A DNA stretch of 64,000 bases from positions 496,001 to 560,000 of the forward strand of contig NIVC01000382.1 in assembly GCA_002269645.1 (NCBI GenBank). Direction: 5' to 3'. A program made the position numbers and the translations under genes. The stretch's first letter is position 1. Each line of letters begins with the position of its first letter. Shown one piece after another: positions 5,122 to 49,065 of the stretch. Under the pieces are notes generated by a model. It had not been told where the DNA came from, made no database searches, and saw nothing but the letters and a program-made list of their open reading frames with translations. The stretch comes from Macrostomum lignano (Eukaryota).

Positions 5122-6762
5122 CTATGCATCCGTGCATTCAATAAACGACTCTGGACCACTTCGCTCGTCGTTAAAATTTTCAACTATTTCCAAGTCTGAC
5201 TGGGTATTCTTTCTTGACCACTTCGCTAGCGGCAGTCTAATAGCATCGAAAGCATTGATAGCAAAGCTATGCGCCAACTCCAGCAGCTCTAAAATAGACA
5301 ACAGCGACATGCCCATGAACAGCCCAAGCAGACCGCCAATGTCGGCAATCAAAGAGTTGAAGCTGTACGCCAGAGACAGTTGAACTTCTTGGCTTCTACG
5401 AGAAGAAGCTTCCAACTCAATCTGCAGAATGGACTGTTTGACTTCCTCCATTGTGCTGTTGAAGATAAGCTGTGAAAGCCCAGGACCACTATTCGACATG
5501 TCGTAAGAAGTCAGCAAAGCCGGAATGATAAATTCTTGCCAATTGCGCACGGAGGGCCAGCTGCTAGCTGAGTGCCTGTAACTGTAAACACGGTTTCTAC
5601 ACGGGACATCTCGTTCGCAATTCTTTGTGGCAGCGTCCAGCAAATTCGCAATTGATAAAATCATTACTGAATCGATGATAATGTCAGTCTGTACTCTCGA
5701 TAGGTTAAAGCACGATGATAGAGACCGGTACTCCCACGGAGTCATAATGGGATAAACGCTACAATTGAATCTCTCCAAGGACAACCGAGCAACTTCGCGG
5801 TACCAGCACACTGCTTGACTGTACTCTATCGTGACCATATTTCCCGTGTACTGATCAACAAACTGAGCTGTACTTTCTTCACTTTTTGCCTTACATTTGT
5901 CGGGAAAATCTTCCGACGTGTACACTTTGTCTTGCATCTCGATCTGAATCGAATGCTTGTGGGCTGGCCCCACGAGCACTTGCGTGTCCATCTCGCTCGG
6001 ATGCTTGCCTTTCGGAGTTAGAAAGATTCTGCAGCCGATTGGCACAGCGAAATCAGTGCCATATATAACATTCCAATCAAAAGGTCTCAGATTTAAATTG
6101 TGGCCGTAAAAGTCGTGTATATCTTCATCCCCACTTTCTCTTAACTGGGGTGGAGGATTTGAATCCAGAAACAGAACCAGCTGAACCACATTGTTCGGAT
6201 TTTGTAGAGCTGAACGTTCTTTGCTTGTGATATTCAATCCAAAACAGTTTATGAAATATGAGCTGCGCACGACAGATAGATTCCATTCTTCCTTACCTGC
6301 TACGTAGACATAAAGCACGGACGACAGTTGGTGGCCCAACTTGTCCGACAAGAATCTAAACGGTAGGCTGTTTACTAGCCTAACGGTGTATGTATTAAGC
6401 GCACTCTGTGAGTCTTCTGGTGCGAATTCTGCCACTGCGGTTCGAACCATACTTCTATACCGATTCAGTATCCTGGAGTCTTCATCACTTAGATAAGCAG
6501 GTTGGCTGGCAGAAATCGGCTTCTCGTTGCAGACATACACATCTGGGAACTCAAAATCCAAATGATTCTCCTTAATAGTAGTAGCAACGTCTCCTCTCGA
6601 ATACCTACTACAGGCGTCGTAGATTCGTTGAATGCAGTAGCTGAATGAAAAAAGGAGAGCCACCAACCAGATTGTCTTCACGTAGGCCTTTCGATTGCTT
6701 GACAGTCGGACTATGCCGTGAACAGAGCTCTCGCTGATGCAGTTTATCAATGATGCACGCAT
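5122..6762 (-). CDS. DEG/ENaC (ASIC/FaNaC-like) amiloride-sensitive channel subunit, 546 aa, single exon
   Basis: N-terminal SVHG motif, TM1 (IWLVALLFSFSYCI), FPDVYVCN, Cys-rich ectodomain, TM2 LIADIGGLLGLFMGMSLLSILELLE with a GxS filter. Confidence 0.92.
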   Translation of the reverse strand: MRASLINCISESSVHGIVRLSSNRKAYVKTIWLVALLFSFSYCIQRIYDACSRYSRGDVATTIKENHLDFEFPDVYVCNEKPISASQPAYLSDEDSRILNRYRSMVRTAVAEFAPEDSQSALNTYTVRLVNSLPFRFLSDKLGHQLSSVLYVYVAGKEEWNLSVVRSSYFINCFGLNITSKERSALQNPNNVVQLVLFLDSNPPPQLRESGDEDIHDFYGHNLNLRPFDWNVIYGTDFAVPIGCRIFLTPKGKHPSEMDTQVLVGPAHKHSIQIEMQDKVYTSEDFPDKCKAKSEESTAQFVDQYTGNMVTIEYSQAVCWYREVARLSLERFNCSVYPIMTPWEYRSLSSCFNLSRVQTDIIIDSVMILSIANLLDAATKNCERDVPCRNRVYSYRHSASSWPSVRNWQEFIIPALLTSYDMSNSGPGLSQLIFNSTMEEVKQSILQIELEASSRRSQEVQLSLAYSFNSLIADIGGLLGLFMGMSLLSILELLELAHSFAINAFDAIRLPLAKWSRKNTQSDLEIVENFNDERSGPESFIECTDA

Positions 6763-9555: not shown

Positions 9556-11881
9556 TCAAACGTCGTTCAAAAGTGTCGCTAATAATGATCTGCTGATAAA
9601 ATCGTGATTTGGTGAGATTTTTTTGAATCCTCGGCAGTTGTCACGCAAATCTGAAACAACACGCGCAACGGAGCAGAGGCTTGTCTGTTTCTGAGGGCTT
9701 GTAGTCCAGCTGATCATCAAATCGAAGCCATATTTCCAGATGATGGCCAGCAGTGGCTGCAACTCGCTCTTGTCCGTCATAGTTAAGCCTTTATCTAGCC
9801 ATTGACCGCCGTAGTTAGCAATGATGCCGTTTCTTCTAAAGTCGGTAATTACCGCTTCTGGCATTGTGGCTTCGAGATTGACAGTTAATACTGGTCTTGA
9901 CTGACCAATCCGGTAAATAAATAGCAAGGTTTTCGGATCGGATGGGAAATGTTTGCAGTAAATTACATAAAAAAACTTGCTACCCCTTTCAAACAGTTTC
10001 GTTCCTTGTGTTGACCGGAAAATCACTTCAGAGCATTTGTAACAACATTCGTCGAATGCTAGCTCAAGTCTTCTTGGTGGAGTGAGAACGACCTTGGCGA
10101 CTCGGATATTTCCGTTTTCTAAAATGCCCAAATAATATTCACTTTCTGTTGTACTTGTTAACAGAAACTCTCCGATCTGACCGTTGCCGAGTTGAACCTG
10201 ACTCATCTGCTCCAAAGTCTGACACCTTGAACGCATCAGTGATATGAACGTAAAGCAGCGAGGTACTGTATCATCGCTCTGCCAAGATTCTTTGCTGCCA
10301 CCCAGGACAGCAAAGTACCGATCGACAGCTGGCACAAAGTTCGAAGTTTTTGTTACCTCATACATGCCGAATGCGCCGATAATCGATTGCGCGCTTCGAT
10401 TTTGCCGACTAAGTTGACTTCCATTGTTAATTCCAACAGTTGAGTCTGGTCCATTCAGAAATACCGGATTTTCAAACTGATCAGCTTTGATGGCTTCAAT
10501 GGGCAATGAGTAGAGCAGTACGAAGGTTTCGGTCAATATAAGCAAGTGCACCAAGTCACAACTGCTAGTGTCACATTTGTAAGCTTCCAGGCCAACAATT
10601 GCTTCTTTGGATGGCAATGGCAGCAAACAAAGGGGCACTGCGGGCCCAGATCTGCGCTTCTCCAGCGGTACAATGGCGACCCAATTTCCCGGTGGCAGCC
10701 AGGTGCGATCGGGTTTTTTATTTTTGGCTTCGTTTTCATTGGGAGAATGATGGGTACTTTCACGAGTAGAACTAGAACTTGAAGAATCTTCGGTCGCTGA
10801 CACCCGGTCCGATACAGCAACGCAGACAAGCCAGCCGATTTGCGTCTCACTGGCCTTCCCTACTTGAGTCCAGGTCACAGGATACTCAGGCAGACGGAGT
10901 CGCCACTTGTGCAAATACGAATTGCGTCGGTCGAAGGCTGTCACAAGCAGAAACTGCAGGCATAATTTTTTACTGCTCGTCGTTGAGCAGAAGCACTGGA
11001 CATAGAATGGATGACGGAGAGAAGCATAGCTATAGCATTATAACTTTCTGTGAGAATTTTACGTAAACCCAGCCATAACTAAGCCCACATTCTCAATTTC
11101 TGAAAAACCACAGGAAACTTAGCAAAGCAAAAAAATCGTTTAGGTCATTTGCGACAGTCCCATACAACAATCGAACCTCGATGGCAGAAATGTACTTTTT
11201 ATTTTTATCGACGTTCAGTCGACGTATAGCGTCGTTATCCGTCGATGTAATGTAAAGGCATATATTGGTCATCGACGTCGATAGACGTCGGGAACGTCGG
11301 TCAGACTTCGCCGGAGTCCGATTGCTGTACGGAAGTGTTCCAGGCTACACGAGTGCTTTGTAATCCATATACTAAAATGTGTTCGCTAAATAAGGATTGG
11401 CGCTTGTAAAGCACCGATATACGGAATTATAACGCTGTAAATTTCAACGCTGTATAAGTGTATGATTACAAAAAGTTCGAAAGCAGCTTACCACCCATGC
11501 TAACTTTTGTTCACTGTCTGCAGGTGCATCAGAACTAACTGGATTAATATCTGCTTCAGCTTCAACTGGACAGAGACTGCACTGAAACCACCAGTCTCCG
11601 TGAAGCATCTTGAGCAGCTTAGGCAGTCCGAGTCTCTCTCCGCTCTCACTGTCGCTTTCCGGATTCGCAAAGCCCATTACTCTCGCCACGGCGCCCCAAC
11701 GACCGTAGAGCCTGTCGACAGAGCTCTTCCATTTCTGGCTCAACAGGCGACATCGAATGAGACTTTTTAGGTCCAGCAGATTGAGAATGCGAGCTTCCAA
11801 CTCTTCTGGAATAGACTGGTTAAACAGCTTCGTTTGCTGCTGTTGCACCGGCTCTGGATCCTCGACGTCAGCCTCAGGCAT
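9556..11881 (-). CDS. F-box protein, two exons (11881-11492 and 10953-9556), about 595 aa; C-terminal region unassigned
   Basis: F-box motif IPEELEARILNLLDLKSLIRCRLLSQKWKSSV. Donor GTG|GTAAGC at 11491 and acceptor CTGCAG|TTT at 10954 are both phase 0 and join the F-box ORF in frame to the 462-aa ORF. Confidence 0.75.
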
Positions 11882-13012
11882 AGTTTTAGACGAGTGAACT
11901 TTTGTATATGCGACTAGCGCATTTCACATACACTTAAATAAGAGGCAATAAATTTGTAAAAAAAGCTGTTCTAAATAATCTGAGATCTTCCCCATAAACA
12001 ATATTCCTTCCGAAAGTGACGGTTCGGCCCAACTGCCCTATCTGATTTATAAAAAGGTTACGACAAAATCGTTAGGGGGCTATAGAAGCTGTTGTATTCA
12101 TGATGACTGTGGATATAGTTTGTATTGGCTATTGACCCCCATTTCCTTTTACATGTAACTAATCAAGAAGAGTTTTTCGTTAAGTTCCAAAGTTGGAAGG
12201 CAATCTTTCTGGCGCTAACTAGAGTATATCAGCTATATATATATACAATGTGTTGTTTAAATTGTACATTACATTTACATTTGTTGAGTTCAGAAATCAA
12301 ATGGTTCAGCCAATGTCTAACATGTACGTCGTTCTTGAATTCAGTATAGTTTTGGAAAGTTAGATAACGGATATCCAAAGTTTATAGATTAGCCTAGGGG
12401 TTTAGGACAGGTTGTGCCATAGACAATATGCAAATTTCTAAGAAACAAGCAAATCTAGAATTGGACATCAAAACTTCATTTTTGATTGGGACTCCAAACA
12501 GAGCCACAGATTGAATTCGAAGTGCAGCTGACAACCAAAAGCACAAGCAAACAACACCACAAAGACGAACAATAATACTGAGAATTTAGTAGCATTTAGG
12601 CTGCATCCTACCGCCAGTAGTCTACTTTACAACCCCCAATTTGAACATTTTAAATCGGGAAAATGTGCGTAATTATAATTTACCCTTGAATTAAGCTATG
12701 CACTAATAAATTTACAAGCTCGTAATGTTTTTCTACAGCAAAAATTAAACTAACGATGCTTAGGTAAAACTGCGGTAGTGACAATGAGAGAAAAATGGGA
12801 CAGACAATTGAATTATATCGTATATTTTAAATTAATGGATTCGTAAGAGTCGAAAAGCAGTAAGTGGCGCACGGAGAAACAAAGAGTAAGCACAGGCGAG
12901 TGCAGATCACCTGAAGAGCTGTATAAAAATCGCGACAGATTTTGATGCAGTGTTCGGAGAAATATTATATACAATGTCACTCTGTAAACATTTTAATTTT
13001 GTAGTTTGAATC

Positions 13013-14106
13013 TCATTTCCATCGCTCTCTCGCGTCCATCCTCATCGCGTCCCAAAGCTTGGCGAGGTTGACGGAGTCTGGCGGCTCCCCCATGGCGAAC
13101 AGGCTCACCTTGACCTGCGTAGTAAAGGGGGAGCCGTAGCAGTCCTGAAACCCCAGCTGATTTGGCTTCACATCAATTCTGTCAACTTTCCACTCGGACT
13201 CGTCCAGGATCTGCCAGCCGTCGCAGTCTGTCCAGTACGGAAAGATGAGGAAGAACCAGAAAGCTCCCCGCTCCGACTCGTCAAGGATGTCCACAACTCG
13301 CCTCGCTGTGGCTCTGAGCAGGATCTCTTCAAATGGAGGGTTGAGCACCCAGCCGCCTGGATACTGCATCAGGTCTATGTGAAAAAAGTCGCCCAGACTG
13401 CCGAATGGGCTGTCAGTGTCAGGGAACAGGCTGCAGAACTTTGCTCCTTGCCGACCCAGCAGCTGACAATTGAGGGGCGAAGCGAAGCCCTCGTGAGCGG
13501 CTTTGCCCAGCTCGAACAGGGCATCGAAAGCTTTGGGGCAGAGGCTGGACTCGCCGCCTCTGAACATTCTCAGGCTGTAGTAGCGAAGGCACACCAGCGC
13601 GGCCCGCTGCTCACCGCACAGCTCGACCAGCTGCTTGACTCGCTCGCTCCAAGGCGTGCAGAATTTCCCAAATGTGATGGGCCTCGGCTGCCGGCCTCCT
13701 CAAATCGCAGCTGCACAGTTTGCTCCTCCTCTGCGATTTCACTCTCTCCTTGTAGAAACTGATCGATCATGGACAGCAGCGACTCTACCAGATGCGTCGC
13801 TTCGTCTCTCGACATGTTGCTGAAGCTCCCGCAGAACGATTTCACGAACTCATCTTTGCTTCTGTTATCGTTCAACTTCTGTGGCAGCAGACGGAATGTC
13901 TCGGACATTTGCTGACCATCGGTGGTCTGCATGGTGATGAGCCAACGACCGAATTGAATTTCTGTCCTTTTCTGCTGATTTCTATGCTCAGCTGGCTGAA
14001 ACCGTTGAGTGCGTTTCTCGAGCCAATTCTCGAGTCGGTCTATTTCCCTAAACTGGGAATACTCGAGCAGCAGTTTGACGTGAAGGTTTTGTTCTTCATC
14101 AGCCAT
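13013..14106 (-). pseudogene. PCIF1/CAPAM-like adenine-N6 methyltransferase, copy 1, frameshifted at about 13679-13681
   Basis: Two overlapping ORFs (14106-13570 and 13594-13013) are colinear with the intact copy at 44367-45497. Here AATGTGATGGGCC versus AATGTGATTTGGCC in copy 2 (1 nt shorter). FASPLNC, FPDTDSPFGSLG and NPPF are retained. Confidence 0.85.
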
Positions 14107-14871
14107 AGTAAACTTCTACCATTGCCTTCTCACCTTAGGTCCTGGTTTTATGCTATCAGTTTTTTTCGTTTTTCGCTTTTCATTTTGTTTCTTTTTGGCT
14201 TTGAGATTTGGACTCGGTTTGTCAGCATCCGAACTGAAGTGTACGCTATGTTTTTCGAAACCCGCCCTCACGACTAAATGTACACATTTTGCAGCCTTTA
14301 TACTGGGCTATTTTTAGCAGATTTTGAACTATTTTTCAACAAAAACAATTCCTAAGAAATTCGTCATTGAAAGCAGGCGTAGAATAATACATACGAAGGA
14401 AAGAGGCAAAAACTGTGTACTGGCCATACATTTTATATTCCCCAGATAAGTCACTCAGCGACCACAAGCATGCCCATAAAGCCTTTGTCTTTCTTAAACA
14501 TTTTTGGGACTTATCAGGTATCATGTCTATAGCTTGTGCGCCTATTAAGGGTTTTTAAAGGCATATTTAGCTATTTTCAGTATAAGGCTTTCAAATGTTG
14601 TATGTTTCACTTGAACCAGCGAGTGAATAACCAAATACTAGATTGTTATTAAAACAGTTAAACATTTGAACGAAGTACAAGAAACGATAAACATCCAAAG
14701 GTTTTAACAATAGTGAAGCTATTGTGAAGAGCTTGCTACAGTGTGAAGTGTGAAGTGTGAAGAGCTTGCTACTTGCTACTTGCTATAGTGTGCTACTGTA
14801 GCTAGTTAAACGTGTGTTATAAGATTGACTTCTTGTTTAATCGGTCTCCACCAGTTCTGTTGAAGCCGACT

Positions 14872-15150: not shown

Positions 15151-15660
15151 TCAGCACTCGTCTGCCTATTTGTTTGATAGCAAAGTGCAAGGACGAGATG
15201 ACTGGTGAACTTTGTATTTGTTGCGAATATTTTTGTAACCACCGCAAAAATATGCTTATGTCCCTTTAAGCTACTGACCTCAGACTTGTCTCAAGCGCTG
15301 TCGGCTTGATTAAATTTTTCTTGCAATTTGCGTGGTCGATATTTTCCTATTGAAAGCATTGAGAGTGGCGTATCTAGGGAATATAAGATCTATGGTACCG
15401 CTAATCAAGACTAAGTATGAGATCATACCAAAACTGTAATAAATCATGTATTCTCAGATTGCTTGACCCACAAATTGTGAGCAACATGTACCAGTAGGCT
15501 CAGAAGCGGAATAAAAAACGACAGCTGACAGAAAGAAATCTCATTAAAAAAGTATTTTTTTGCATTTTAAAAGCAGAATTAAAGGAAAGGATTCCGGCTT
15601 ACACAGTAGTAGATGAATAAAGGAAGAAAACAAATATTAATTTTTTTAATAAAAACGTAT

Positions 15661-15828
15661 ATGCTGATACGTTTCGATAATTTCGGTCATCTTAAGGGCA
15701 GCTTGGGCAGCTCGTACAAAAATTCCGGCCTAGATAGAGGGGCAGAGAGAAAGAGAGAGAGGGAGAGTAGGGTGCATTAGCGTTCTGACTAGCTAACTGC
15801 CAGTTCAAATTATGCTTTTGAGCTTAAA
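15661..15828 (-). mobile_element. 3' part of a Penelope-like element (hammerhead-core-like relic), separated from its GIY-YIG part by the Helitron array
   Basis: Homologous to 48037-48293, which is contiguous with GIY-YIG-homologous sequence at 48294-48430. Contains CTTAAGA-T-GACC-GAAAT-TATC-GAAA. Confidence 0.5.
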
Positions 15829-23337: not shown

Positions 23338-26300
23338 CTAATCTCGTGTGAGAATCTCTGGATAAACGACGTTCTTTGTCGTGGTTCCCGGCATCCTGAC
23401 TCGGATATTCGCTGCATTCTTGGCTCGAGACAGAGCAGTGTAGAGCTGTCCGTGAGCAAAGCATCCCACAGTCAGGTCAATGCCGACAGTCTCCAAGCTC
23501 TGCCCCTGGGACTTGTGGATAGTCAGGCAAAAGCTTGGCTTCACCGGAAACTGCAGCCGTTTGAATGCTACGGGCAGGTCCGCGTTGTTCGGCACCAGAG
23601 GGATCCGCGGCAGCAGGATCTCATCGCCGGTGAACTGGCCGGCAGCCACTTTGCAGCGCAGCACGTTCTCGCCCAGCGCTAGGATAATGAGTCGGGTGCC
23701 GTTGCAAAGCCGCGGTGGGTTGAGGTTGCGCAGGAGCACAATTGGCATGCCAACTTTGAGTCTCAGCAGGTGCGTTGGAAAATTTGGCGCATCGAGCTGG
23801 TTCAGCAACTCTGGCGGGAAGTGAGTTGCCGAATCCTCGTCTGCAACGCTGTCGACTGATCGGTACTCGCGCTGTGTCCCAGGGAACATGGCCAGGCAGT
23901 GCTCATTGATGGCATTGACGGAGTCATTGTAGGGTGCCAGGATGGCTCTATTTGCAAAGTAGACCTCTCTCTCCGCCGAGGCCTCAAATGACGGATAAAC
24001 GAATTTGATAAGGTCCGTCAGGCTGGCCTCTGCTGGCAACAAGATCTCGGAAGGCAGCGAAATGTTTCCCTCCAAATCTTCTGGGACCAAACCAGAACCG
24101 ATCTGTGAACGAAAAACGGATAAAAGAGAAAGCAAAATTACGTTTCCAACATAAAGACTTGATAAGTATAATCATAAATAACAGTTGGTTTTAGATATCA
24201 AAAATCACTGGTTACGTAATCTATTATTAGAAAAGCCAGGTAGAAAATAAACAACCTACAGCAATCAAAAGTACGGTATAAAAAGTACAGTGTACATCCC
24301 ACCTGAATCAGAAGTCTCGAGTAGCGCTCATACAGTGCCGCATCGGAACTCCTCAGCAGCCGTATGTTGGTCCTCAGGCGATGCCGCTGAAACAATGGCC
24401 AAAACTTGGATCGGCTGACGCACGCAAACACGTTGTTGGCTCGCGTTCCGCTTTTCACGACAGGCAGCAGTTGTCGAAAGTCTCCGGAGCACACAATCAC
24501 AGCTCCACCGAAAGGGCGATCTTGCCTTCGTACGTCTCGCAGACTTCGTTCGACAGTCTCCAGGTCCTTCCGGTTGGCCATTGAAATCTCATCCCAGACG
24601 ATGAGCCGAACCGTCCGCAACACCGCTGCTTGCTTTGACTGCGAGCTAATCGAGCAGACGTCCTTCTCCGAGCGAACGAGTCGAACTGGGATCTTGAAAC
24701 TGGAGAGAATGAAATTGTGCACAGGCCATCAGAATTTTTTCTTGAATGTAAGCAATCAATTTTCTGAGATTGTTTCGGCAGATTGTGAAGCTGAAAAAAA
24801 TTACATACAACTTTTATATTTCTTTCTTTGAATTAATTTTAAAGAAAAATCAAAACCTCTAATCATGCCGTTATATAGATAGATTGCATGTACTATGCAC
24901 CAATACATGCAGAAAGTTAAATGTAGCAAAATTAAAAACCATGAAGTTTAAAACTCACGTGGAATGCGCCGTCTGTCCACCTGGTAGCAAAGTGGCTGCA
25001 ATGCCAGATGACGCTACGGCCAGGGCGACTTCTCCGCGGCTTCTTACAAACGCCAGCAAAACCTCTAGCAAATAGGTCTTCCCTGACCCAGCTGGAGCGT
25101 CCAGAAAATGCAGACCGCCAGAGCCGGCAATCAGATCGGCAGTCACTGCCTCGTACACGGCCCTCTGTTCGTCGGTCAGCGTTGGCAGGCGCGTCCTCGC
25201 TATCTCAGCCTGCTCGTCCGTGTCGAACTGCATCGGGCCTACTTGAGGCATGGCAGAGGCGGCCGGCAGCCCGTACTCTCGCAAGCTGCGACCGCCCATA
25301 GAGGTCAGCAGGCTTTGCAGCTCGCGCAACGTCATGTCGGTGACCTCTTCTGTACTTAGATCACGGTTGTGGTAGCGTAGATCTTCGCCAAGGTCCTCTG
25401 CGAATGCGTTCCACAGGTCCAGTCCGCTATCCGGCTCTCCCCAGATCAGAATGACAGCGAGTAGGTGCCTGAGGGCTCTTGGCATGCGAGATTGGACAGC
25501 CTCAGCCAGACATCGTTGCCAATGGTCGTCACGATGCAGCAGACCGAGTGCCATGCAGGCAGATTTGGCATCCGTGTGCAGCACTCCATCCACCGTGTGC
25601 AGCGACTTGAAGCTGGTGGGCCCTCGGACATGCAGGAGAAGCAGGCGCATGTAAAACAAGTCCCCTGCCCTCGGGCTCACCGTGTACATCCGAGAGATGT
25701 TCTTGCTGCGCTTCACACCAGGGTGACCTTCGACTTCGTCGCCCATCTTGCCTCGGCGCCACGCGCGCTCAGTTTGGTGCCAGACGAAATAGGACGGCAC
25801 CTCCGTGTAGAGCAGACGCCGAGCAAAAGCGTCACTGAGGCACAGCTTGAAGAATGCTGTCAGAGTCGAATCTCGAGGCGCTCTTGCTTTGGCCGCCGCG
25901 GTCTGCTCGTTGAAGTAGACAAGCTGCTCTCCCGGCTTGTGTACGCAGAGGCGAATGACCGGTGGGAAGCGGTTGTGCACCTGGGAGATGGTGGGAAATG
26001 GCGAAAGAGCTTTGGGAAGTAAATAAGTTAACACTCGGGAAACACAGCTTAAGTTTTGTCACTGCATAACTATGATGAAAGTTTGTAAGCCACAGTCAAA
26101 AAGATAATTACTTCAAAGCCCAAAATGGTATTCACAGCCTCCATGGGCCCGATGTAGCGACCAGACAGGTACTCATCAATTTCGTCTCGTGGCTCTTTGG
26201 CAGCCTTCTCATTGGCAGTGCGCTGCTGCTTGTTAGAAGCTATCGGCTGACTTTCAGCTGCAGCTGCAGGCGCCTGGGGTTTCGCTGAATTCTTAGCAGC

Positions 26301-29300
26301 GTCAACTTTGAAGGTTGCCATGTCGCCATTCTTGAGTAAATATTTAATGATGTACTTCACGGCTCGAACCGTCGCGCAAACTTCAACGTTCAGGTGGCAG
26401 TTGAACATGAGCAACAGCTCTCGATTATATGGCACGACCCACCTTGCGTTTTGAAGGGAATTCCGGGTTCGTTGCTTGTTAATAATTTTAAATGAATGCT
26501 TTAAATTCAAGATGGTAAATTTTTCAGCTAAGAAGAAGCTGAAAGAAGCAATGTTAGAATTTTCTGAACCAGAATAGTAAGAACTTAGCTGTTAAAATAG
26601 TGCTAAGACGGCCGGGCAGCTCACTCATGTGGAAATCCTCTTTTTCACTCACCTGTTGTCCATACGAATGGTTCGGCCCTTGCATAATTTGTCGACGGTG
26701 AAGCCGCCCATTTCTGGTGACAGTCTCCGATAAAACGGGTAACCGGTTTCGCTAGACATCGTCACCGACTGGAAGTCCTTCGGGAAGCCTTTGGTACACT
26801 TCCCCTTCTCCATGCAGGGACAGGCTGGGTTATCCGCCCCACATGGTCCGTGGATGAGGTGCGTCTTGACCAGCTCATGCAGCACGGGCTCAAGCTGTGG
26901 GTCTGGGATCTCCGCAGACACAAGCGCGTCGTACCGATCTGGAGTTACTCGGTGTCCGCTGGCCAGCCACAGTAGAAAGTGCACATGTGGAAGTCCTTCA
27001 GTGAAATGAAAGTCAAATCAGAAAAAATATTTACTGGAAGGGAGCATGCTAGAGCAAGGTAGAAACATCAGTGAGGCTTGAACTCAGCAGAAAGCAAAGT
27101 GTGTAATAAATAAGTTATTTCTGATCAACTGAACTCACCGCGCTTCTGGTATTCCAGAGAACAAACGTGCGCGGCTTCCACTCCAAAGCGATGTCTGAGC
27201 TCCGAGACGAGGGCCTTCTTCTTAAGCTCGAAGACACGAGTAACGATGTCAGGACGATCCTCTGGCCGCTGTCCTGGCAACAGTTCAGCGGTGATCTCTG
27301 GCCACTTCGGATTGCAAGTCGCCGTCACGAACAGATCCGGCTTGCCGAATTTCTGAACGTAAGTCATGGCGTCCTGGAGCCGCTCCATCAGATATCGCGG
27401 TCCGCCCACGAAGCTTGAGGAGAGAAACACGGGCGCCTGCTTTCCAATTTCCTTCGGCTCCTTGCCAGTGTGCAGTCCATCAGCTGCAAACAGGGCATCA
27501 CGCAACCCACTGTAGGTCTCGCTGCGAAGGTCGTCCTGATGAGTACGCAAATAAAGAAGCCTCTCCGACTCGATCTTGGCCGCCTGATCCACCAGGTACT
27601 GCTGAAACAGCCGCCGGCCGTGGTGCAGCACGTTGAACTGGTCGGCTCGCACCATGATCTCGCTGGCGTAATACTTCATGGGAGTCAGTTTGCGGCCATT
27701 GGTCATGCGAAGCTCGGGATGCCAGCCGCTCTCTCCGTTCGGAAACAGAAGGACGTACTCTAGCGGATCGTATGATCTGTGTGTCTCAGAAATGCGCTTG
27801 GTGTCACCTCCTCGCAGTTGGATGACGACTTCACGACTGTTCGGTGCTTCCTCAGCATCCCCGACAATTAGGATTCCGACCTCGTTTGCCGTGGGCAGAT
27901 TGTACCGCCTTATTGTGGACAGATGGGGTTTCAATCAAATTTATTATACTATATTAGAAGATTCTACTAAAATATCCATGTTTGAAAAATGCAGCTTACC
28001 GAATGTGTTCACCAGCCGGGCGTCGATCTGGGTAAATCACAATCCGCGCATCGCACAGCTGAGGATCTTCGCTGATTCGCTGCGCTGCAGCCCGCAGACT
28101 CCGCACATAGGAATTGCACTCGTGAAGCAATCCTTGCAGCAACTGCAGCAGCTCAGGCTTCACTCTTTGGCTGAGGCTAAGGCGGCTTTCGAGCTCGCGG
28201 TCCATAAAGTACACCTGCCAGCCCCTAGGCGCATTCGGAGCATCAGCTAGCAGCGGCGCAGTGTTGTGGTACAACTTTCCGCTGATCACAAAGCTCGGGT
28301 TCCAACCACCAGGCGTGGGTCGCAGATCAGCACCGAATGACGTCAGGTGCAGAACCGAGTTATAGCTCCTGATGTTGGCCAGGAACTCCTTGCTCTTCTC
28401 ATGCCTTCCGGTGTACAGGTCAGCCAACACTGGCGGAACAGTCCGGACAGGCAATTTCACTTTGCCCTTGGCGCAGCAAAACTCGGCTTCCTTGTCCCAG
28501 CGCAATGCGCCGCAGAACTTGCACACAGAATTCATGCGGCCACACTGATGGGTCGGCACTTCTGGTCTTGGCTGGTCGGAGTTCCTGCAATAAATTTTCG
28601 GCAGAGTGTCAGTTAATTTTATTAACATTATTTTTCCAGTCACTGAAAGTGTCTCTTTAGAGTAAGTTAAAGTTAAGAATTATATGAGACTACGCATAGA
28701 AAAAATAGCGGACGAAATTGAGTAAAAAAATCAAGTTAGCCGCTGGGAGGTTTAAGCACCTGATTATGTGAGAATGAACGGAACAATTATTTTCTATGTA
28801 AAAACTGTTATAAAAACCTCAATAAGCATGCCTGCTTAAGTATCGTTTGTGGCTCACTTTTCTGATCCCTGTCCTTTAGTGGGATTACTATAAAGAGTAA
28901 AAACTTGTTTAGCATGATCGCCGCCCTTCAGACATTACCTCTGCTGAGCTTCCGCTTCGTTTCCAGCTTGAGTCTCCGCACGAGCGCCAGGAGCAGAAGT
29001 AGCAGCAGCTGAGCCAGCAGGTCTCTTGCGCCAGTTGACTCTGGTTCTTGCAGCAGGTGCTCTGCTTGCAGCTGGAACGGGGAACTCCCGGTCCTCCATA
29101 GGCTCTATTCCCTGCAAAGGATCTCGGAGTCTCAGAGATTCATAGTGCTCATTGCTCAGAACCAGGCGCACAACAGCCAGAGGAGGCTGCGCGAAGGACA
29201 TAAAGTGCTGCAGCACACTTCCATTGCGCTGGTAAATAACCAGGTCAACCGGAAAGCAGCGACTTAAAAGGGGCACGATTTCATCAGGCACATAAGTTCC

Positions 29301-30245
29301 CTCTGTAAATGAAGCTTCGATTATGGCATCCGCATTCTCTGGGAAAACAAAGCCTTCGACAATCAACTGTGGCACCAGCTCTGCCGCGCGGCTTGACAAA
29401 TTGTGCCTCAATGAAGCAGCATCGGTTTCAAGTGCGGTGCCTCGCAACTGATCACAAACAGCGTGAAAAAAACAATTTCCATCACCGGCTATGGGAACTA
29501 TGCTCAATTGATTAAAAGATACCTGAGCCGCTGCTGCTGGTTCACTATTTTCCTGTCTAAAATTGAGAGGGAAAATGGTCAGTCAAATAAAAAATTGTGA
29601 CTGAAGATATGTAAGGGGCTGAAGTGATAAAGGTAAATTATATTTTGCAGGTCTTACTTAAGTATTCTTAATGAAATCTGCTTAAACTAAATGCAAAATG
29701 CAAAAATTCAAGGTAATACAGAACGATGCAATCATCAGCTATACAAAAAGAAAAAAAGAGACCAGAGAAAAACGGTGCAGTTTAAATCAACAAAAGCAGA
29801 AGAGTAACCGTTATAGGTATAGATCAGCAGACTTACCTCGAAGCCCAAATGCTCCGGCGACGTAATAGCTCAGCCTCGAGACGATCCAAACGCTCGTATC
29901 CTGTTTCGGAAGCACGGCGGTCAGCTTCTCGCTGCCGCATGTCTTCCAGGCGGGCAGCTCTCTCGGTGTCAGTCTCGCAGGCTCGGTTGGCAGCAATCCT
30001 CTGCCGCAGCTCCTCGAGCCGAGCAGCTCTCTCAGCGTCAGTCTCGCAAGCCCGGCGCTCTGCGTCCCGCTGTCGCAGCTCCTCGAGCCGAGCAGCTCTC
30101 TGGGCGTCAGTCTCACGGGCTCGGCGCTCTGAGTCCCGCTGCCGTCGTGTTTCCAAACGGGCTTCGCGCTCAGCGCTAGATTCTTCACGTCGCCTTTTTT
30201 TGCCTCACGGCTTTTCTTTAAATGACTTGCTCCACGGCGACCCAT
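23338..30245 (-). CDS. Helitron RepHel transposase: STPR repeats + OTU protease + Zn finger + HUH Rep + PIF1 helicase; 9 exons, 1746 aa if one A is added at the A7 run (30195-30201)
   Basis: Exons 30245-29837, 29556-28939, 28584-28000, 27908-27139, 26995-26653, 26442-26112, 25980-24959, 24699-24303, 24102-23338. All 8 introns are GT-AG with matching phases, and splicing rebuilds canonical motifs across junctions: EHIR|RYNLP, EYQKRG|LPHVH (HUH), DNR|WVVPYN, KYIIKY (Y2), GFE|VHNR, DAPAGSGKT (Walker A), TAHS|TFKIP, VWDEISM, GDFRQLLPV, TIHKSQGQS, HGQLYTALSR. Exon sum 5240+1 = 1747 codons. Confidence 0.93.
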
Positions 30246-42879: not shown

Positions 42880-43310
42880 CTGGTGGTCAACACAGAAAAC
42901 CGTCGTGCTCTTGCTGCCGGACGACATCGAGGCTGCAAATTTGTGCCGAGGCGCTGATGGACAGGCGGCAGAGCTTCCGCGTTGTCAACAGTTCGTCTAC
43001 CTCCGTGGTCTGATTTTCGGCGTCCGCGAAGGCTTGCGGCGTCGCCGCGGGCTTGCCTGGGCTGCCTTCCATTCTGTGAGGGCAGTCCTGCAGTCCGAGG
43101 ACCTACCTGACCGCCAGAGGATGGCATTCTTCCAGGCGGTGGTCGAAACCGTCCTGTTGTAGAAAGCTGAGACCTGGACGCTGACGGATTCACTCGAGCA
43201 ACAAGTTGACGCGGCGCCCACTGGCCTAATGCGCGCCGTCTTTAAGATCGGCTACGAGCAAGTGACCAACGCGCCTTTGTATCACCGCGCCGGCCTGGTC
43301 CGCCCAAGCA
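42880..43310 (+). mobile_element. Non-LTR retrotransposon (RTE-like) reverse transcriptase C-terminal fragment
   Basis: LPRCQQFVYLRG...RRRRGLAWAAFHSVRAVL...FFQAVVETVLL*KAETWTLTDSLEQQVDAA...LMRAVFKI, typical of the region after RT motif 7 in RTE-like LINEs; contains an in-frame stop. Confidence 0.75.
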
Positions 43311-43566
43311 GTCTGAGTCTCTCTCCGGTCTCACTGTCGCTTTCCGGATTCGCAAAGCCCATAACTCTCGCCACGGCGCCCCAACGACCGTAGAGCCTGT
43401 CGACAGAGCTCTTCCATTTCTGGCTCAATAGGCGACATCGAATGAGACTTTTTAGCTCCAGCAGATTGAGAATGCGAGCTTCCAACTCTTCTGGAATAGA
43501 CTGGTTAAACAGCTTCGTTTGCTGCTGTTGCACTGGCTCTGGATCCTCGACGTCAGCCTCAGGCAT
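43311..43566 (-). pseudogene. Truncated duplicate of F-box exon 1
   Basis: Near-identical to 11628-11881 for about 85 codons, then joins the RTE fragment at about 43310. Confidence 0.85.
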
Positions 43567-44366
43567 AGTTTTAGACGAGTTAACTTTTGTATATGCGACT
43601 AGCGCATTGCATATACACTTGAAATAAGCGGATTAAGAAATGAAGTACAATAAATTTGTAAAAAGCAGTTATAAATAATCAGAGATCATCCCCATACACT
43701 CTCCGCATACGAGAATAGTATATTCGTTTCGAAGGTGACGGATCGGCCCAACTGCCCTTGCCGACATACATGTACAAGGCGCTAGGGGGCTATAGAAGCT
43801 TTTTTATTCATGATGACTGGATATAGTTGTAGTGCTATTGGCCGCATTTGTAACGTTTTTTACATGTAACTAGTCCCGACAAAGCGTTTCGTTAAGTTTC
43901 AAAATTGGAAGGGAATATTGTTGTCGTGACGTGAATCCTGGCTACGCGCCTGGTTCGAGCTCGTAATGTTTTTCTACAGCAAAAATTGAACTAACGATGC
44001 TTAGGTAAATTGCGGTAGTGACGATGTAGAGTAAAATAAGACAGACGATTGAATCATATCGTATATTTCAAATTAATGGATTAATAAGAGTCGAAAAACA
44101 GTAAGTTCGACACAGGAACCAAAGCTAAATAAAACCAAAACTAACTTAATAGATGGGGTTGAGTCCAGATGAAAGAAAGGTAGGAGTGCGCGGCTGAGGA
44201 AAGAGGCAAAATTGAAGAGCCAATCAGAAGGCAGCGAGGGAGAGAATTTTACAACTGAACTACTTACTGGACAGAGGGAGAGAAAACAGAGTAAGCAGAG
44301 GCGAGTGAAGATCACCTGAAGAGATGTATTTTAGAAACATTGGAGAAATTTAAAAAACAATGTCAC

Positions 44367-45497
44367 TCAGTAAACTTTTTTCTTTATTGAATAGGATCTC
44401 ATTTCTGTCACTCGCCAGCGTCCATTCTTCCTCATCGCGTTCCAAAGCTTGGCGAGGTTGACGGAGTCTGGCGGCTCCCCCATGGCGAACAGGCTCACCT
44501 TGACCTGCGCAGTAAACGGGGAGCCGTAGCAGTCCTGAAACCCGAGCTGATTTGGCTCCACATCAATTCTGTCAACTTTCCACTCGGACTCGTCCAGGAT
44601 CTGCCAGCCGTCGCAGTCTGTCCAGTCAGGAAAGGTGAGGAAGAACCAGAAAGCTCCCCGCTCCGACTCGTCAAGGATGTCCACAACTCGCCTCGCTGTG
44701 GCTTTGAGCAGGATCTCTTCAAATGGGGGGTTGAGCACCCAGCCGCCTGGATGCTGCATCAGGTCTATGTGAAAAAAGTCGCCCAGACTGCCGAATGGGC
44801 TGTCAGTGTCAGGGAACAGGCTGCAGAACTTTGCTCCCTGCCGACCCAGCAGCTGACAATTGAGGGGCGAAGCGAAACCCACGTGAGCGGCTTCGCCCAG
44901 CTCGAACAGGGCATCGAAAGCTTTGGGGCAGAGGCTGGACTCGCCGCCTCTGAACATTCTCAGGCTGTGGTAGCGAAGGCACACCAGCGCGGCCTGCTGC
45001 TCACCGCACAGCTCGACCAGCTGCTTGACTCGCTTGCTCCTAGGCGTCCAGAATTTCCCAAATGTGATTTGGCCTCGGCTGCCGGCCTCCTCAAATCGTA
45101 GCTTCGGGGTTTTCTCCGCCTTTGCGATGTCACTCTCTCCTTGTAGAAACTGATCGATCATGGACAGCAGCGACTCTACCAGATGCGTCGCTTCGTCTTT
45201 CGACATGTCGCTGAAGCTCAAGCAGAGCGATTTCACGAACTCAACTTTGCTTCTGTTGTCGCTCAACTTCTGTGGCAGCAGAGGGAATGTCTCGGACATT
45301 TGCTGACCATCGGTGGTCTGCATGGTGATGAGCCAACGACCGAACTGAATTTTCGTCCTATTCTTCTGATTTCTATGCTTAGCTGGCTGAAACCGTTGAG
45401 TGCGGTTCTCGAGCCAACTCACGAGTCGGTCTATTTCCCTAAACTGGGAATACTCGAGCAGCAGTTTGAGGTGAAGGTTTTGTTCTTCATCAGCCAT
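44367..45497 (-). CDS. PCIF1/CAPAM-like adenine-N6 methyltransferase lacking the WW domain, 376 aa, intronless, intact
   Basis: GFASPLNC, CSLFPDTDSPFGSLGDFF, NPPFEEIL and FWFFLTFPDW match the PCIF1 catalytic domain (ECFASPLNC...AFPDTDGYFGSRG...ANPPFCEEL...FIVFIPEW). FGRWL...PLLP resembles the PCIF1 helical region. No WW motif. Confidence 0.88.
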   Translation of the reverse strand: MADEEQNLHLKLLLEYSQFREIDRLVSWLENRTQRFQPAKHRNQKNRTKIQFGRWLITMQTTDGQQMSETFPLLPQKLSDNRSKVEFVKSLCLSFSDMSKDEATHLVESLLSMIDQFLQGESDIAKAEKTPKLRFEEAGSRGQITFGKFWTPRSKRVKQLVELCGEQQAALVCLRYHSLRMFRGGESSLCPKAFDALFELGEAAHVGFASPLNCQLLGRQGAKFCSLFPDTDSPFGSLGDFFHIDLMQHPGGWVLNPPFEEILLKATARRVVDILDESERGAFWFFLTFPDWTDCDGWQILDESEWKVDRIDVEPNQLGFQDCYGSPFTAQVKVSLFAMGEPPDSVNLAKLWNAMRKNGRWRVTEMRSYSIKKKVY

Positions 45498-45904
45498 AGT
45501 AAACTTCTACCATTGCCTTCTCACCTTAGGTTCTGGTTTCATGCTATCAGTTTTTTCGTTTTTCGCTTTTCATTTTGTTTCTTTTTTGGCTTTGAGATTT
45601 GGCCTTGGTTTTATCAGTGTCTCAACTGAAGTGTACGCTATGAGTACACTTTGGATAAAGGGAGAACTTACTATCCCCCAACTCTGCTCTTTACAGCAAT
45701 CCATTGTTCTCAAAAAGTGGAACTACGTTTGCCTATACGTGGATCCAACAGTACTCAAAATCTCTTACCTAATCTAGTTGCTATTGACAACCATTTCATT
45801 CTCTCTATAGTGTCTATTGTATAATATACTGAGAAAAATTGCTAGAGCTCTACCTACTAAAGAGCCGCAGATCCAACATTAGCAAAGCTGTATCCTCTCT
45901 GAGC

Positions 45905-47013
45905 ATGGCTGGGGAAAACATTAGAACAGAATTGACCGACGATTTGGAAGGTCTGTTGACAAAAGATAAAACTCAAGTAAAAAAATTTCCTTGAAGAACT
46001 TTTGAGAGAGATTCCTGATGAAAGAAAAGAATATTGGTGCCAGAGAGTCAATTCAAGTTGGGACTTGGAAGGATCATTAATTTTACTGGAAGACCTCTTC
46101 ACTGGAGACGATAATGAAGAAGAAGAATTGAAGAAGAAGAAAGAAGAGATGGAACAGAGAACGCAAAGGAAGATCAAAGAACTGAAGCAGAATTTGAAGA
46201 ACTAGGTAGTGAAAGGAAAACTGAATGTGATCTGCAACCCAGCGCTTGAGAGCTTTCACTACGATCGAAGGAAAGCTCTAAGTGAGTCAAGGATAAATGT
46301 CACTATTAATAACAATTCGAGGAACATAATCTTCTATGCAATTCAAGCTGGCCAGATTTTTCTACAAGTCAAACAGAAGTTGAATCGAAGTGTCATGATG
46401 GCAACTTATATGGAGCACAAGGATATTTAGTTGTCAGTCAATGAGAGTTTAGGGACATGGTCGTGCTTGCGGCCAAGCCAAATCGAGCGCTTGTATTTTG
46501 GAACTGAAAGAAGGCATACACACTGAAAGATGGTATTGATATACTAGCTTACAACTCAAAGGATGAACAAAGTTTGAACATACCAGGGTAGACACAGTTT
46601 AAGCACATACGTATTGGCTGCATTAACGAATCATAAGGCATAACACTAAGGGTGCCTTCATGAAATTTCTGGAAGGAAAGGACAATGGACAACAAAAGAT
46701 TGGCATCAAGAAGGCAAGTGCCTACTTCTTCATGAAGCTAGCAAAAGTTTCCGAGAACTACCCAACAATTCAACAAATTGCTATGCCGCTCCGAGAACTC
46801 CAAGCGATTTTGCCGGTGTACCGGTATTTTCGAGAGTATGGCCCGGAAACCCGGCCGAGACGGCTAGTAGCGGCAGTCACTCAGCTCCGGAAGCGTCGAG
46901 AAGGGTCGGCCCGACTAGGTGATGACGTGCGACTCAACCGGATTCGCCGCCTTGCCGCGGTGTGCGGATGGTCGGGACGGCAGCTGCCGGAACTATTTTG
47001 TCTGCCGTTTTAG
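45905..47013 (+). pseudogene. Unclassified decayed ORF between PCIF1-like copies 2 and 3
   Basis: A coding-like reading MAGENIRTEL...(frameshift at A7)...EELLREIPDERKEYW...coiled-coil...VVKGKLNVICN continues through several stops; no family recognised. Confidence 0.3.
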
Positions 47014-47269
47014 TTGCGAATCTTTTCTATGCGCGCGTATACCTATTAAAATTTTCTTAATTGTATGCATGCGCATGTGTTGCATTTTTTCCTAACGAGT
47101 CGTGTACGGTGTTTGTTTTATTTTAATAAAACTTTCAAGATCCAAAAATTATTTTCTTACTAATAGGTTCAAATTTTTTTTTGTTTTTTTATTAGTCCAA
47201 GGGAGTTTTGGTAGGGCTCCTAGAATTCATCGGTTATTACGCTAATTATTATTAATTTCTCAAGTCTCA

Positions 47270-47473
47270 AGACATTTGCTGACCATCGGTGGTCTGCATG
47301 GTGATGAGCCAACGACCGAACTGATTTTCTGTCCTTTTCTGCTGATTTCTATGCTTTGCTGGCTGAAACCGTTGAGTGCGTTTCTCGAGCCAACTCACGA
47401 GTCGGTCTATTTCCCTAAACTGGGAATACTCGAGCAGCAGTTTGACGTGAAGGCTTTGTTCTTCATCAGCCAT
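47270..47473 (-). pseudogene. PCIF1-like copy 3, 5' stub (68 codons)
   Basis: MADEEQSLHVKLLLEYSQFREIDRLVSWLEKR... is near-identical to copies 1 and 2 and breaks off at about 47270; the upstream region matches 14110-14380. Confidence 0.85.
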
Positions 47474-49065
47474 AGTAAACTTCTACCATTGCCTTCTCAC
47501 CTTAAGTTCTGTTTTCATGCTTTCAGTTCTTCGCTTTTACCTTTTTATTCTGTTTATTTTTCGTCTTTAGGATTTGGCCTTGGTTGGTCAGCATCCGAAC
47601 TGAAGTGTACGCTGTTTTATGAAACCCGCCTCGCAATATTTAATGTACACATTCTATAGCCTTTATAAGAGCGTAATATAGGGCTATTTTAGCAACGTTT
47701 GAATTATGCTTCAACAAAAACAATTTCTAAGAAATTTTACGTCTAAAGCGGTCATCCAATTTTTTGCACGTGAAGGAACGGGGCTTAAATTGTGTACCGC
47801 TAATCAAGACTAAGTTTGAGATCATAGCAAAACTTTAATAAAACATGTAATACCAGATTGCTAGGGCTAGGCTAGCAAATAATGAGCAACATGTACCGGT
47901 AGGCTAAGAAGCGGATTTAAAAACGACAGCCGATTCAAAGAATTCCTATTAATTTTTTTCGTTCTAACTGGCTTATTAAACAGTAGCTAGAAGAATTAAT
48001 TAAAAAACAAGCATTGAATATTTAATCAAAGAATCTATATGCCAATGCATTTCCACAATTTCGGTCATCTTCATCGCAGCTTATACAGATGTATTTGAAG
48101 ACAGCACAATGCGCAGTAATATTTCTGCAGCAAAAAGTCCGGCTATGATAGAGGGGGCAGAGAGGGGGAGAGAGATAAAGAGATAGGGTGCAGTAGTCAG
48201 AAGTGTACACCCCATCCTAGAATACGTTGAGTTGTCGGCTGTCACCCCCTTCCATGGCAAACAGACAGTTCAAATTATGCGTCTGAGCTTTAATGTAGCT
48301 CGCACATGGCCTCTAAAGTGCTCAGAGTGTGTTCAAGACGGCAGGAATAAATAACATTAGCCTAAAAAACTCGTGAGGGTTGCCGTTACAACACGAATCA
48401 CACGCGAGAAGGTGCTCTTGCTGAGCAAGAAATTCTTGCTGACAAACTGAGCTCTGATGATCAGGGGAATTCTGTGCATGGTTCGGACAAGGACCACTAG
48501 AAGTTACCGTTGCTTTTATTTACGCTGTATAGCTACTGAGAATCACGAATCTCCTCCAGCATCTAGGTTATATAGATTACAGTCGTTTCGGGGACAAGAC
48601 CATGGGACCCTTTAGTGACAGTCCTTTAGGTGAAAAGCATAATTTTATCGTGGTTATAAGTATTGCTTAGTGTTAAAACTTGAAAAGTTAAGATTTTTAT
48701 CCAAATTGTATTTTAGATCAGACAAGTATCGTTTTATTTATTAATAGTATTGTTATTATTATTATTAAACAGACGCTGGCACAATGAGTCACGAAGAAAA
48801 CGGTGGACAAAAGTTGAGTCCAGCCTAGCAGACTGAGGGGTAAGGCCCAGAGCCTGCAAATCAGAGAGAAAAGTGTCAGTCAGAGTTGTGGTGCAGAGAC
48901 CCCTAAAAATTTTAAACTTTTGCTTGCTGGCAGCTTGTACAATATAAAGAAATGTAGACAAATATTATCAGCGGAGTAAATATTTAAGTTGAAATAAGAA
49001 GGTTTAGAAAATGGTTTAGAACAACTCATTTTGGTACTCATCGTTTCATAAATCAGCGCAACTTG

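Follow-up and report, generated by a model that had tools for sequence, protein, structure and literature searches.

The window analysed here, a 64,000-nucleotide stretch of contig NIVC01000382.1 of the flatworm Macrostomum lignano, contains an intact open reading frame (ORF) for a 376-amino-acid (aa) relative of PCIF1/CAPAM, together with a frameshifted paralog and a short 5′ fragment of the same gene; these are referred to as copies B, A and C, respectively. Copy B probably encodes a cap-adjacent adenosine N6-methyltransferase of the CAPAM type that stands alone and, like the giant-virus proteins, lacks a WW domain; its gene has been locally duplicated, probably with gene conversion, and may be decaying. 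The protein belongs to a known enzyme family as a divergent variant and does not represent a new modification system. The family, the fold, the integrity of the motifs, the absence of the WW domain, the structure of the copies, the relationship to viral proteins and the contrasts in selection were established in the analysis and are set out below. Knowledge of PCIF1/CAPAM comes almost wholly from the vertebrate enzyme, which is tethered by its WW domain to RNA polymerase II (Pol II), and a WW-less branch that is abundant in giant viruses and expanded in the tractable M. lignano offers a way to ask how cap marking of the N6,2′-O-dimethyladenosine (m6Am) type works without coupling to the carboxy-terminal domain (CTD) of the polymerase.

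The catalytic core of copy B and the absence of a WW domain

An earlier note on this DNA had described the ORF and placed it in the PCIF1/CAPAM family with intact FASPLN and NPPF motifs, and its coordinates, basic description and family membership were all borne out. Pfam entry PF12237, which is named “PCIF1_WW” yet models the methyltransferase (MTase) domain, matched residues 168–321 with 93.6 bits against a cut-off of 31.1 (E=1.4e-26). In a single-sequence search, the PDB chains of PCIF1 6irv and 6irx (human, zebrafish) were matched at E~1e-9, and human PCIF1 scored 40.7 bits. Across 30 diverse family members, F208, P211 and N213 of the FASPLN motif, a putative element of S-adenosylmethionine (SAM) binding, are invariant, and A209 and S210 are conserved in at least 90%; in the NPPF motif, the two prolines (P257 and P258) are invariant, with N256 conserved in at least 90%. 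In human PCIF1, the mutants N553A and F556G showed lowered enzyme activity, and the m7G cap is contacted by R239, R269 and E563 of human CAPAM (PMC11550742). The copy B ORF is uninterrupted and spans the entire module of full-length viral homologs, with which its protein start coincides; it is a single enzyme gene without dedicated partner genes.

The AlphaFold 2 (AF2) model of the protein, built from a 30-sequence alignment, has a mean pLDDT of 88.9 and a pTM of 0.88. Against the PDB, Foldseek gave strong matches only to six CAPAM/PCIF1 entries (E 5e-15 to 1e-11, TM up to 0.64); the alignment to 6irw/6irx covers the whole query (TM 0.62–0.64), and the next PDB fold appears only at E~1e-2. The family profile matched the CAPAM chains with 86–92 bits (3e-25), and its N-terminal F-x-RWL...PLLP motif aligns where the helical domain of CAPAM begins. 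Since the helical and the MTase halves are aligned by both fold and profile, both halves of the CAPAM catalytic core are present, and the helical region reported in the earlier note is real (Foldseek E=5e-15, TM 0.64).

The claim that the gene has no WW domain and no introns also holds, apart from a WW domain split between exons, which the motif scans would miss: no WW signature was found in any frame of the 64-kb window with a W-x18-24-W-xx-P regular expression or with PROSITE PS01159, from which an exon-split domain would escape. An in-frame TAG lies 12 nt 5′ of the copy B ATG, and the NCBI model of the ortholog on another M. lignano contig (L001) is a single exon, with no further gene called within 10 kb. 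Given the upstream TAG and the lack of a WW signature, the idea that an upstream exon supplies copy B with a WW domain was dismissed, as far as motif scans of single exons allow. The WW Pfam domain is absent from all 47 relatives found with protein P0010, and likewise from the 10 long relatives and 8 viral proteins that were scanned with Pfam. Copy B accordingly lacks the N-terminal WW domain by which canonical PCIF1 binds the Ser5-phosphorylated CTD of Pol II.

The ~350-aa module holds both parts from which the cap pocket of CAPAM is formed, namely the N-terminal helical domain and the Rossmann MTase with its NPPF motif, and its most likely activity would be the SAM-dependent N6-methylation of the cap-adjacent (2′-O-methyl)adenosine of m7G-capped RNA to give m6Am. 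Recruitment through phospho-Ser5 of the Pol II CTD would not occur, because the protein has no WW domain.

Relatives in giant viruses and in M. lignano

An exhaustive HMMER search of 1.84 billion representatives gave 2,949 relatives at E<=1e-3 and 116 at E<=1e-30, and the best 150 are mostly 300–450 aa long, carry NPPF or NPPY and have no N-terminal WW domain. A profile search of the named protein database returned only seven proteins and contributed next to nothing further. The closest database match is the M. lignano hypothetical protein BOX15_Mlig030305g1 (P0001; 361 aa, 91% identity), which is present in both NCBI and UniProt. Pfam annotation already covers the WW-less PCIF1-like branch, which is large; with 2,949 relatives, members in named giant viruses and a 91%-identical M. 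lignano protein on deposit, the proposal of a strong candidate for an undescribed modification system was not sustained. In the searchable literature, no paper linking PCIF1 to Macrostomum, flatworms or the named giant viruses was found, nor any characterisation of the function of a member of the WW-less branch. A PCIF1-like gene of Kaumoebavirus (KLCC10_0094) has been described as unique among viruses (PMC7909422), and PCIF1 has been placed at the last eukaryotic common ancestor (LECA) as “usually” WW-fused, with WW-less MTase domains noted in DIRS1 elements (Iyer et al., PMC4738411).

The relationship to viral proteins was found by several routes. With phmmer, the copy B protein scored 90–175 bits to short, viral-type proteins versus 40.7 bits to human PCIF1. 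A scan of IMG/VR identified 28 giant-virus loci, many on GVMAG contigs of up to 957 kb; the encoded proteins match the family profile nearly end-to-end (hidden Markov model positions 6–340), and several of the representative relatives are identical to IMG/VR viral proteins over the aligned MTase core. A Foldseek search of BFVD retrieved proteins of Cafeteria roenbergensis virus (CroV), Bodo saltans virus, Tetraselmis virus 1, Hokovirus, three pithoviruses and Salmon gill poxvirus, the closest structural match being the 362-aa CroV protein (TM 0.68/0.70, rmsd 3.9 Å). In UniProt, the short viral PCIF1-like proteins bear Pfam-derived names (CroV, E3T4I2; Bodo saltans virus, A0A2H4UTM5). A segment of five residues after PLN is common to the Macrostomum and viral proteins, which share an LLGxxGA stretch, and is lacking in vertebrate PCIF1. 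The copy B protein is thus of the giant-virus type in being a stand-alone, end-to-end module of ~350 aa that is WW-less and carries the post-PLN insertion. The match in Salmon gill poxvirus, an uncharacterised 315-aa protein (A0A0H4XWM9) with a CAPAM-like fold (E=5.9e-10, TM 0.61/0.72), indicates that PCIF1-like modules are not limited to giant viruses that infect protists.

Among the 10 long relatives scanned with Pfam, one contains PF12237 alone and nine are single-ORF fusions, in which the partners are a viral-type poly(A) polymerase catalytic subunit with GT8, an FtsJ 2′-O-MTase, Rpb2, XRN and a class-I MTase; some of the viral PCIF1-like proteins from IMG/VR are fused to SNF2/SF2 helicases (examples of fusions are loci L003, L012 and L027 and proteins P0016, P0021, P0034, P0050 and P0078). 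Fusion to viral transcription or mRNA-end machinery may stand in for recruitment through the WW domain and the CTD. The contigs of close relatives are dense, intron-free and ORFan-rich and encode HNH endonucleases and a cap guanine-N2 methyltransferase.

The cap and mRNA target is predicted from the retention of the helical-plus-MTase core and from the viral fusion partners, all of which are transcription or mRNA-end enzymes. A substrate different from that of CAPAM, be it DNA adenine (N6-methyladenine), internal RNA adenosines or trimethylguanosine-capped spliced-leader (SL) RNA, appears improbable. The loss of CTD coupling takes away the known targeting mechanism, the clade descends from DNA MTases of the M.EcoKI/M.TaqI type (PMC4738411), and SL trans-splicing is used by M. 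lignano (PMC5730564); however, the protein keeps the helical domain from which the cap pocket is formed, it carries no domain for DNA binding or chromatin reading, and the viral fusion partners act at the mRNA 5′-end, at the 3′-end or in transcription, with none from DNA replication or restriction.

At least five PCIF1-like paralog groups are present in M. lignano: Mlig030305 (P0001), which is of the type found in the window and has NPPF intact; Mlig015920 (P0006; 372 aa), an intronless tandem pair 6.7 kb apart with GPPF in place of NPPF; Mlig021227 (P0003; 440 aa), with about four introns; Mlig000263 (P0005; 1,283 aa), with three in-frame modules, introns and NPPF throughout; and Mlig008908 (P0166; 392 aa). 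In the Mlig000263 gene model (L036:8519-15017), the three tandem modules lie between introns, each with intact NPPF and FASPLN, and the Mlig015920 tandem pair (L037:3280-4395 and L037:10001-11116; P0006, P0155, P0156 and P0009) has FSSPLN for FASPLN in addition to GPPF. The neighbours of the paralogs are ordinary host genes (ferrochelatase, leucine-rich repeat, ankyrin and aminotransferase genes). The PCIF1-like transcript RNA1509_7323 (2,216 nt) is listed among M. lignano germline candidate genes as a member of the family with no specific paralog assigned; its PF12237 score is 105.5, it matches human PCIF1 at e=8e-11, and its best UniRef50 match is in Micromonas (PMC5173321). At least one family member is therefore expressed (PMC5173321), and the window paralog may be as well. 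Neither PCIF1 nor Mlig gene identifiers were found in the supplements of PMC5730564 and PMC5816591.

Neighbor-joining (NJ) trees group all M. lignano paralogs in a single clade that also contains P0007, P0008, P0010 and P0165, with a bootstrap value of 65% for the MTase core (with P0007, P0008 and P0010) and 84% for the full module (P0165 added). P0007 and P0008 are encoded on host-like contigs of low GC content, and P0010 and P0165 have no contig record. The clade is nearest to giant-virus sequences, with vertebrate PCIF1 outside it and at ranks 111–121 of 182 by distance; the closest relatives of copy B are not the PCIF1 proteins of other animals, in a canonical comparison set that is vertebrate only. 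This arrangement is compatible with an old transfer from virus to host or from host to virus, or with an ancient WW-less eukaryotic lineage.

A viral source in particular, in which the Macrostomum lineage or an ancestor acquired a giant-virus gene horizontally, domesticated it and expanded it, would concern the origin of the gene and not its mechanism, and it is less likely than not. Giant-virus proteins are the closest identifiable relatives outside the clade, the phmmer scores to viral proteins are 2–4 times those to human PCIF1, the indel after PLN is shared, the Macrostomum clade has a single origin (84% bootstrap), and a WW domain is found nowhere in the group. Against this, viruses may have taken the gene from protists, and a vertical WW-less eukaryotic lineage is conceivable with PCIF1 at LECA only “usually” fused to a WW domain (PMC4738411); Micromonas is the best UniRef50 match of the M. 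lignano transcript, and a match exists in an EukProt transcriptome. The paralogs moreover have host GC content, introns and host neighbours with no other viral genes nearby, and the comparison relies on NJ trees with vertebrate canonical sequences. An endogenous giant-virus element or contamination at the locus itself was rejected on account of the host-like GC content, the sparse genes, the host neighbours, the introns in paralogs and the lack of other viral genes nearby.

Duplication, rearrangement and selection at the locus

Contig L001, which encodes P0001, is syntenic with the window at 41.3–53.3 kb (92–98% identity, BLAST) and has a single copy of the gene. The features of the window loci are listed in Table 1. 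The lesion of copy A is one 1-bp deletion (coding sequence (CDS) nt 428, at about window 13679/13680), and the copy is otherwise ~95.5% identical to copy B; because this is a single base in an assembly, the evidence that copy A is a pseudogene is weak. A 345-bp piece, which consists of 141 nt of upstream sequence and the first 204 nt of the CDS, occurs twice in the window (45295–45639 and 47271–47613) and once in L001. Copy C is 97.7% identical to L001 and runs on into the upstream synteny of that contig, and the 1.63-kb segment between the two pieces, in which a repeat scan found no terminal inverted repeat and no long terminal repeat and Pfam found no match in the longest ORF, cuts copy B off from its original upstream region. 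The upstream flanks diverge by 0.7% between copy C and L001, by 6.4% between copies B and A, and by 13.6% between copy B and L001. The 345-bp duplication relative to the single-copy L001 identifies copy C as a by-product of local rearrangement and not as a third paralog. Of the three copies claimed previously, an intact B, a frameshifted A and a 68-codon fragment do exist, but the fragment is no member of the family; likewise, the picture of a family that is expanding and turning over is confirmed as regards local duplication in the genome, with one of the counted copies falling away as an independent paralog.

Table 1. Positions of the methyltransferase gene copies and associated features in the window
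Feature	Position	Strand	Basis or remark
Copy B, intact 376-aa WW-less PCIF1/CAPAM-like ORF	44367..45497	-	ORF listing, PF12237, AF2, Foldseek
Copy B, helical N-terminal region	~aa 1-165
Copy B, Rossmann MTase region	~aa 168-345
FASPLN motif, aa 208-213	44859..44876	-	aligned with CFASPLN of human and zebrafish PCIF1
NPPF catalytic motif, aa 256-259	44721..44732	-	aligned with NPPF of human PCIF1
4-bp insertion unique to copy B	44426..44429	-	alignment of B, A and L001
Conserved upstream sequence kept by copy B, 141 nt	45498..45639	-	in-frame TAG 12 nt before ATG
Copy A, paralog 31 kb away, two ORFs	13013..14106	-	NPPF and FASPLN intact
Copy C (“stub”), duplicated 5′ end (68 codons, 47267-47473, then stop) and native upstream region	47267..47613	-
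Extra sequence between the 345-bp pieces, 1.63 kb, unrelated	45640..47270	.	window versus syntenic L001, which lacks the segment
Duplicated segment, locus A	11623..14361	-	matches 43308-45642 and 47271-47736 at B/C (self-BLAST, L001 BLAST)
Further duplicated piece	15395-15704		counterpart at 47794-48082
F-box ORF, 94 aa, downstream of the MTase gene, co-duplicated	43282..43566	-	PF00646 E=2.5e-7
F-box ORF at locus A	11624-11881	-	L001 counterpart L001:11924-12205

The duplicated unit, of ~2.7 kb, exceeds the gene and takes in the F-box ORF. Between copies A and B, the CDS diverges by 4.5% (synonymous divergence dS 0.05) and the flanks by 13–25%; a CDS that is far less diverged than its flanks suggests gene conversion, which has probably homogenised the coding sequences. 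The F-box ORF is 96.5–98% identical at the amino acid level among A, B and L001, and the adjoining non-coding sequence is ~25% diverged; in L001 a Leu codon stands in place of its ATG, and the NCBI record has no annotation for it.

Multiple intronless, WW-less copies could also be explained if the ORF were the MTase domain of a DIRS1-type tyrosine-recombinase retrotransposon or another gene borne by a transposable element (TE). An MTase domain that belongs to the PCIF1 clade and lacks WW does occur in DIRS1 elements (PMC4738411), and the TEs of the window include a Helitron and an unclassified, possibly LINE-derived ORF that adjoins the duplication boundary. The ~2.7-kb unit, however, contains no ORF for reverse transcriptase (RT), RNase H or tyrosine recombinase and no terminal repeats, the copy B ORF has its own ATG and stop codon, and its NPPF motif is intact, whereas the DIRS1 domains are described as degenerate. 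In addition, the locus is syntenic and single-copy in L001, the other paralogs lie among host genes and some have introns, and the Pfam scans of 10 long relatives and 8 viral proteins revealed no RT. On the absence of RT and tyrosine recombinase, the absence of terminal repeats, the intact catalytic motif and the synteny, this origin was rejected as extremely improbable.

Near the 3′ end of copy B, the 4-bp insertion shifts the frame and replaces the last ~7 residues by a 22-residue tail, which is largely disordered in the AF2 model (pLDDT < 50 at residues 366–376). In the genes of the L001 and A types, an AATAAA lies ~25 nt past the stop codon (window 44367–44440, minus strand), and the insertion makes the copy B ORF read through this AATAAA to a TGA 13 nt beyond.

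Taken as a whole, the family is under constraint, and its motifs persist even where identity to viral proteins falls to ~25%. The ratio of nonsynonymous to synonymous substitution (omega) is 0.47 (p=0.004) for the Mlig015920 tandem pair and 0–0.36 (p<=0.013) for the internal repeats of Mlig000263. Mlig015920 has GPPF yet is under purifying selection, which suggests that it is probably a retained non-catalytic PCIF1-like protein. For the MTase half of B, A and L001, omega is 0.48–1.08 and not significant.

Several observations weigh against a functional, CAPAM-type enzyme of giant-virus-like type as the reading of copy B. Over the whole CDS of B, A and L001, omega is about 0.9–1.15 with p(purifying)=0.45–0.62, which is indistinguishable from neutral evolution, and the sub-lineage has accumulated the frameshift in A, the 3′ indel in B and the 5′ rearrangement at B/C, so that copy B is possibly non-functional. 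The trees are NJ trees of 141–295 columns, and vertebrate PCIF1 is the only canonical outgroup, so that “closer to viral than to canonical” holds with respect to vertebrates. Substrate and product, finally, are predicted from homology and fusion context. Neutrality of the copies had itself been named in the earlier note as evidence that would count against its proposal, and for the window sub-lineage this is essentially what was found, with sister groups that are constrained.

Because purifying selection is undetectable in the sub-lineage, the window paralog may be redundant or decaying. In its strongest form, this would mean that the copies are young, redundant duplicates heading to pseudogenes, of which B is intact only through the short time elapsed and has no function of its own, a possibility that overlaps with the preferred reading and that we regard as the less likely one. 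It agrees with the omega of 0.9–1.15 (p=0.45–0.62) in B, A and L001 as compared with 0–0.47 (p<=0.013) in the sister groups, with the frameshift in A, and with the C-terminus-altering 4-bp insertion in B, the 5′ duplication and the 1.6-kb insertion that severed its native upstream region. On the other side, the comparisons involve only 7.5–11 synonymous substitutions, and such small counts give the selection test low power; omega in the MTase half is 0.48–0.64 in both comparisons involving copy A; the catalytic motifs are all intact in B, A and L001; divergence of 4.5% in the CDS versus 13–25% in the flanks indicates conversion or constraint; and the poly(A) signal is kept.

A CAPAM-type, WW-less enzyme thus remains the preferred reading, and the state of the locus would be that of an intact B, a 1-bp-frameshifted A and a rearranged 5′ fragment C within one of at least five locally duplicating paralog groups of single origin. 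A broader scenario, speculative and rather unlikely as it stands, is that the Macrostomum lineage, and perhaps flatworms more widely, domesticated a giant-virus-type, CTD-independent cap adenosine methyltransferase and then expanded it to at least five paralog groups, including a three-module enzyme, constrained but catalytically dead GPPF forms and at least one germline-enriched member, which possibly mark a distinct class of RNA (trans-spliced, transposon or viral transcripts) apart from canonical PCIF1. The viral homologs also raise the question of whether giant viruses mark mRNAs of their own with m6Am. With no detectable constraint and with rearranged flanks, copy B is probably the family member from which least can be learned; better prospects are Mlig000263, Mlig015920, Mlig021227 and Mlig008908, which are constrained, along with the viral homologs.

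Other features were observed elsewhere in the window. An uninterrupted 768-aa ORF at 1159–3465 (plus strand) encodes a 2-oxoglutarate- and Fe(II)-dependent dioxygenase of the TET/JBP family (PF12851, E=1.6e-33), in which a very long Q/P-rich insert splits the halves of the catalytic domain, and an uninterrupted 546-aa ORF at 5122–6762 (minus strand) encodes an amiloride-sensitive sodium channel (ASC/ENaC; PF00858, E=3.5e-44). A fragmented Helitron at 23338–29507 (minus strand) has Helitron_like_N, PIF1 and Pif1 2B in separate ORFs, and an adjoining ORF (28935–29507) is OTU-protease-like by eye, with no Pfam match. Tandem arrays at 16.8–21 kb, 30.2–31.2 kb, 36.76–37.6 kb and 49.4–49.8 kb comprise 23-nt-period satellites, a 47-nt repeat and two 8-nt microsatellites and give rise to long spurious ORFs, e.g., (YLSI)n and (LTYL)n.

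Comparison with known systems

PCIF1/CAPAM of known structure (PDB 6IRV, 6IRW and 6IRX–6IS0) shares with the copy B protein the PF12237 domain, the combination of a helical domain with a Rossmann MTase, the NPPF motif, the CFASPLN-type motif and F-x-RWL...PLLP. The copy B protein differs in lacking a WW domain, in being about half as long (376 versus ~700 aa), in a structural-alignment identity of only 15–16% and a single-sequence score of ~40 bits, and in the five-residue segment after PLN, which is absent in vertebrate PCIF1; in addition, Macrostomum has multiple paralogs, whereas the canonical enzyme is single-copy. Drosophila Pcif1 is a catalytically inactive PCIF1 ortholog that has kept its WW domain. 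Mlig015920, with GPPF and an omega of 0.47, is analogous to such a retained non-catalytic PCIF1, whereas the window's own protein keeps NPPF.

The MTase domain of DIRS1 resembles the window protein in belonging to the PCIF1 clade, in lacking a WW domain and in being multi-copy (PMC4738411), but it forms part of a polyprotein that also contains RT, RNase H and tyrosine recombinase, and it is reported to be catalytically degenerate, whereas the window ORF is free-standing with NPPF intact. The short PCIF1-like proteins of giant viruses are alike in being WW-less, stand-alone modules of ~320–450 aa with the shared indel and NPPF or NPPY, and in the NJ trees they lie closest to the Macrostomum clade. 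Their genes reside in dense, intron-free genomes with a GC content of 58–67% and are often fused to transcription or mRNA-end enzymes, whereas the animal genome that houses the window gene is sparse, and the gene has host GC content and host neighbours and belongs to a paralog family that is partly intron-containing.

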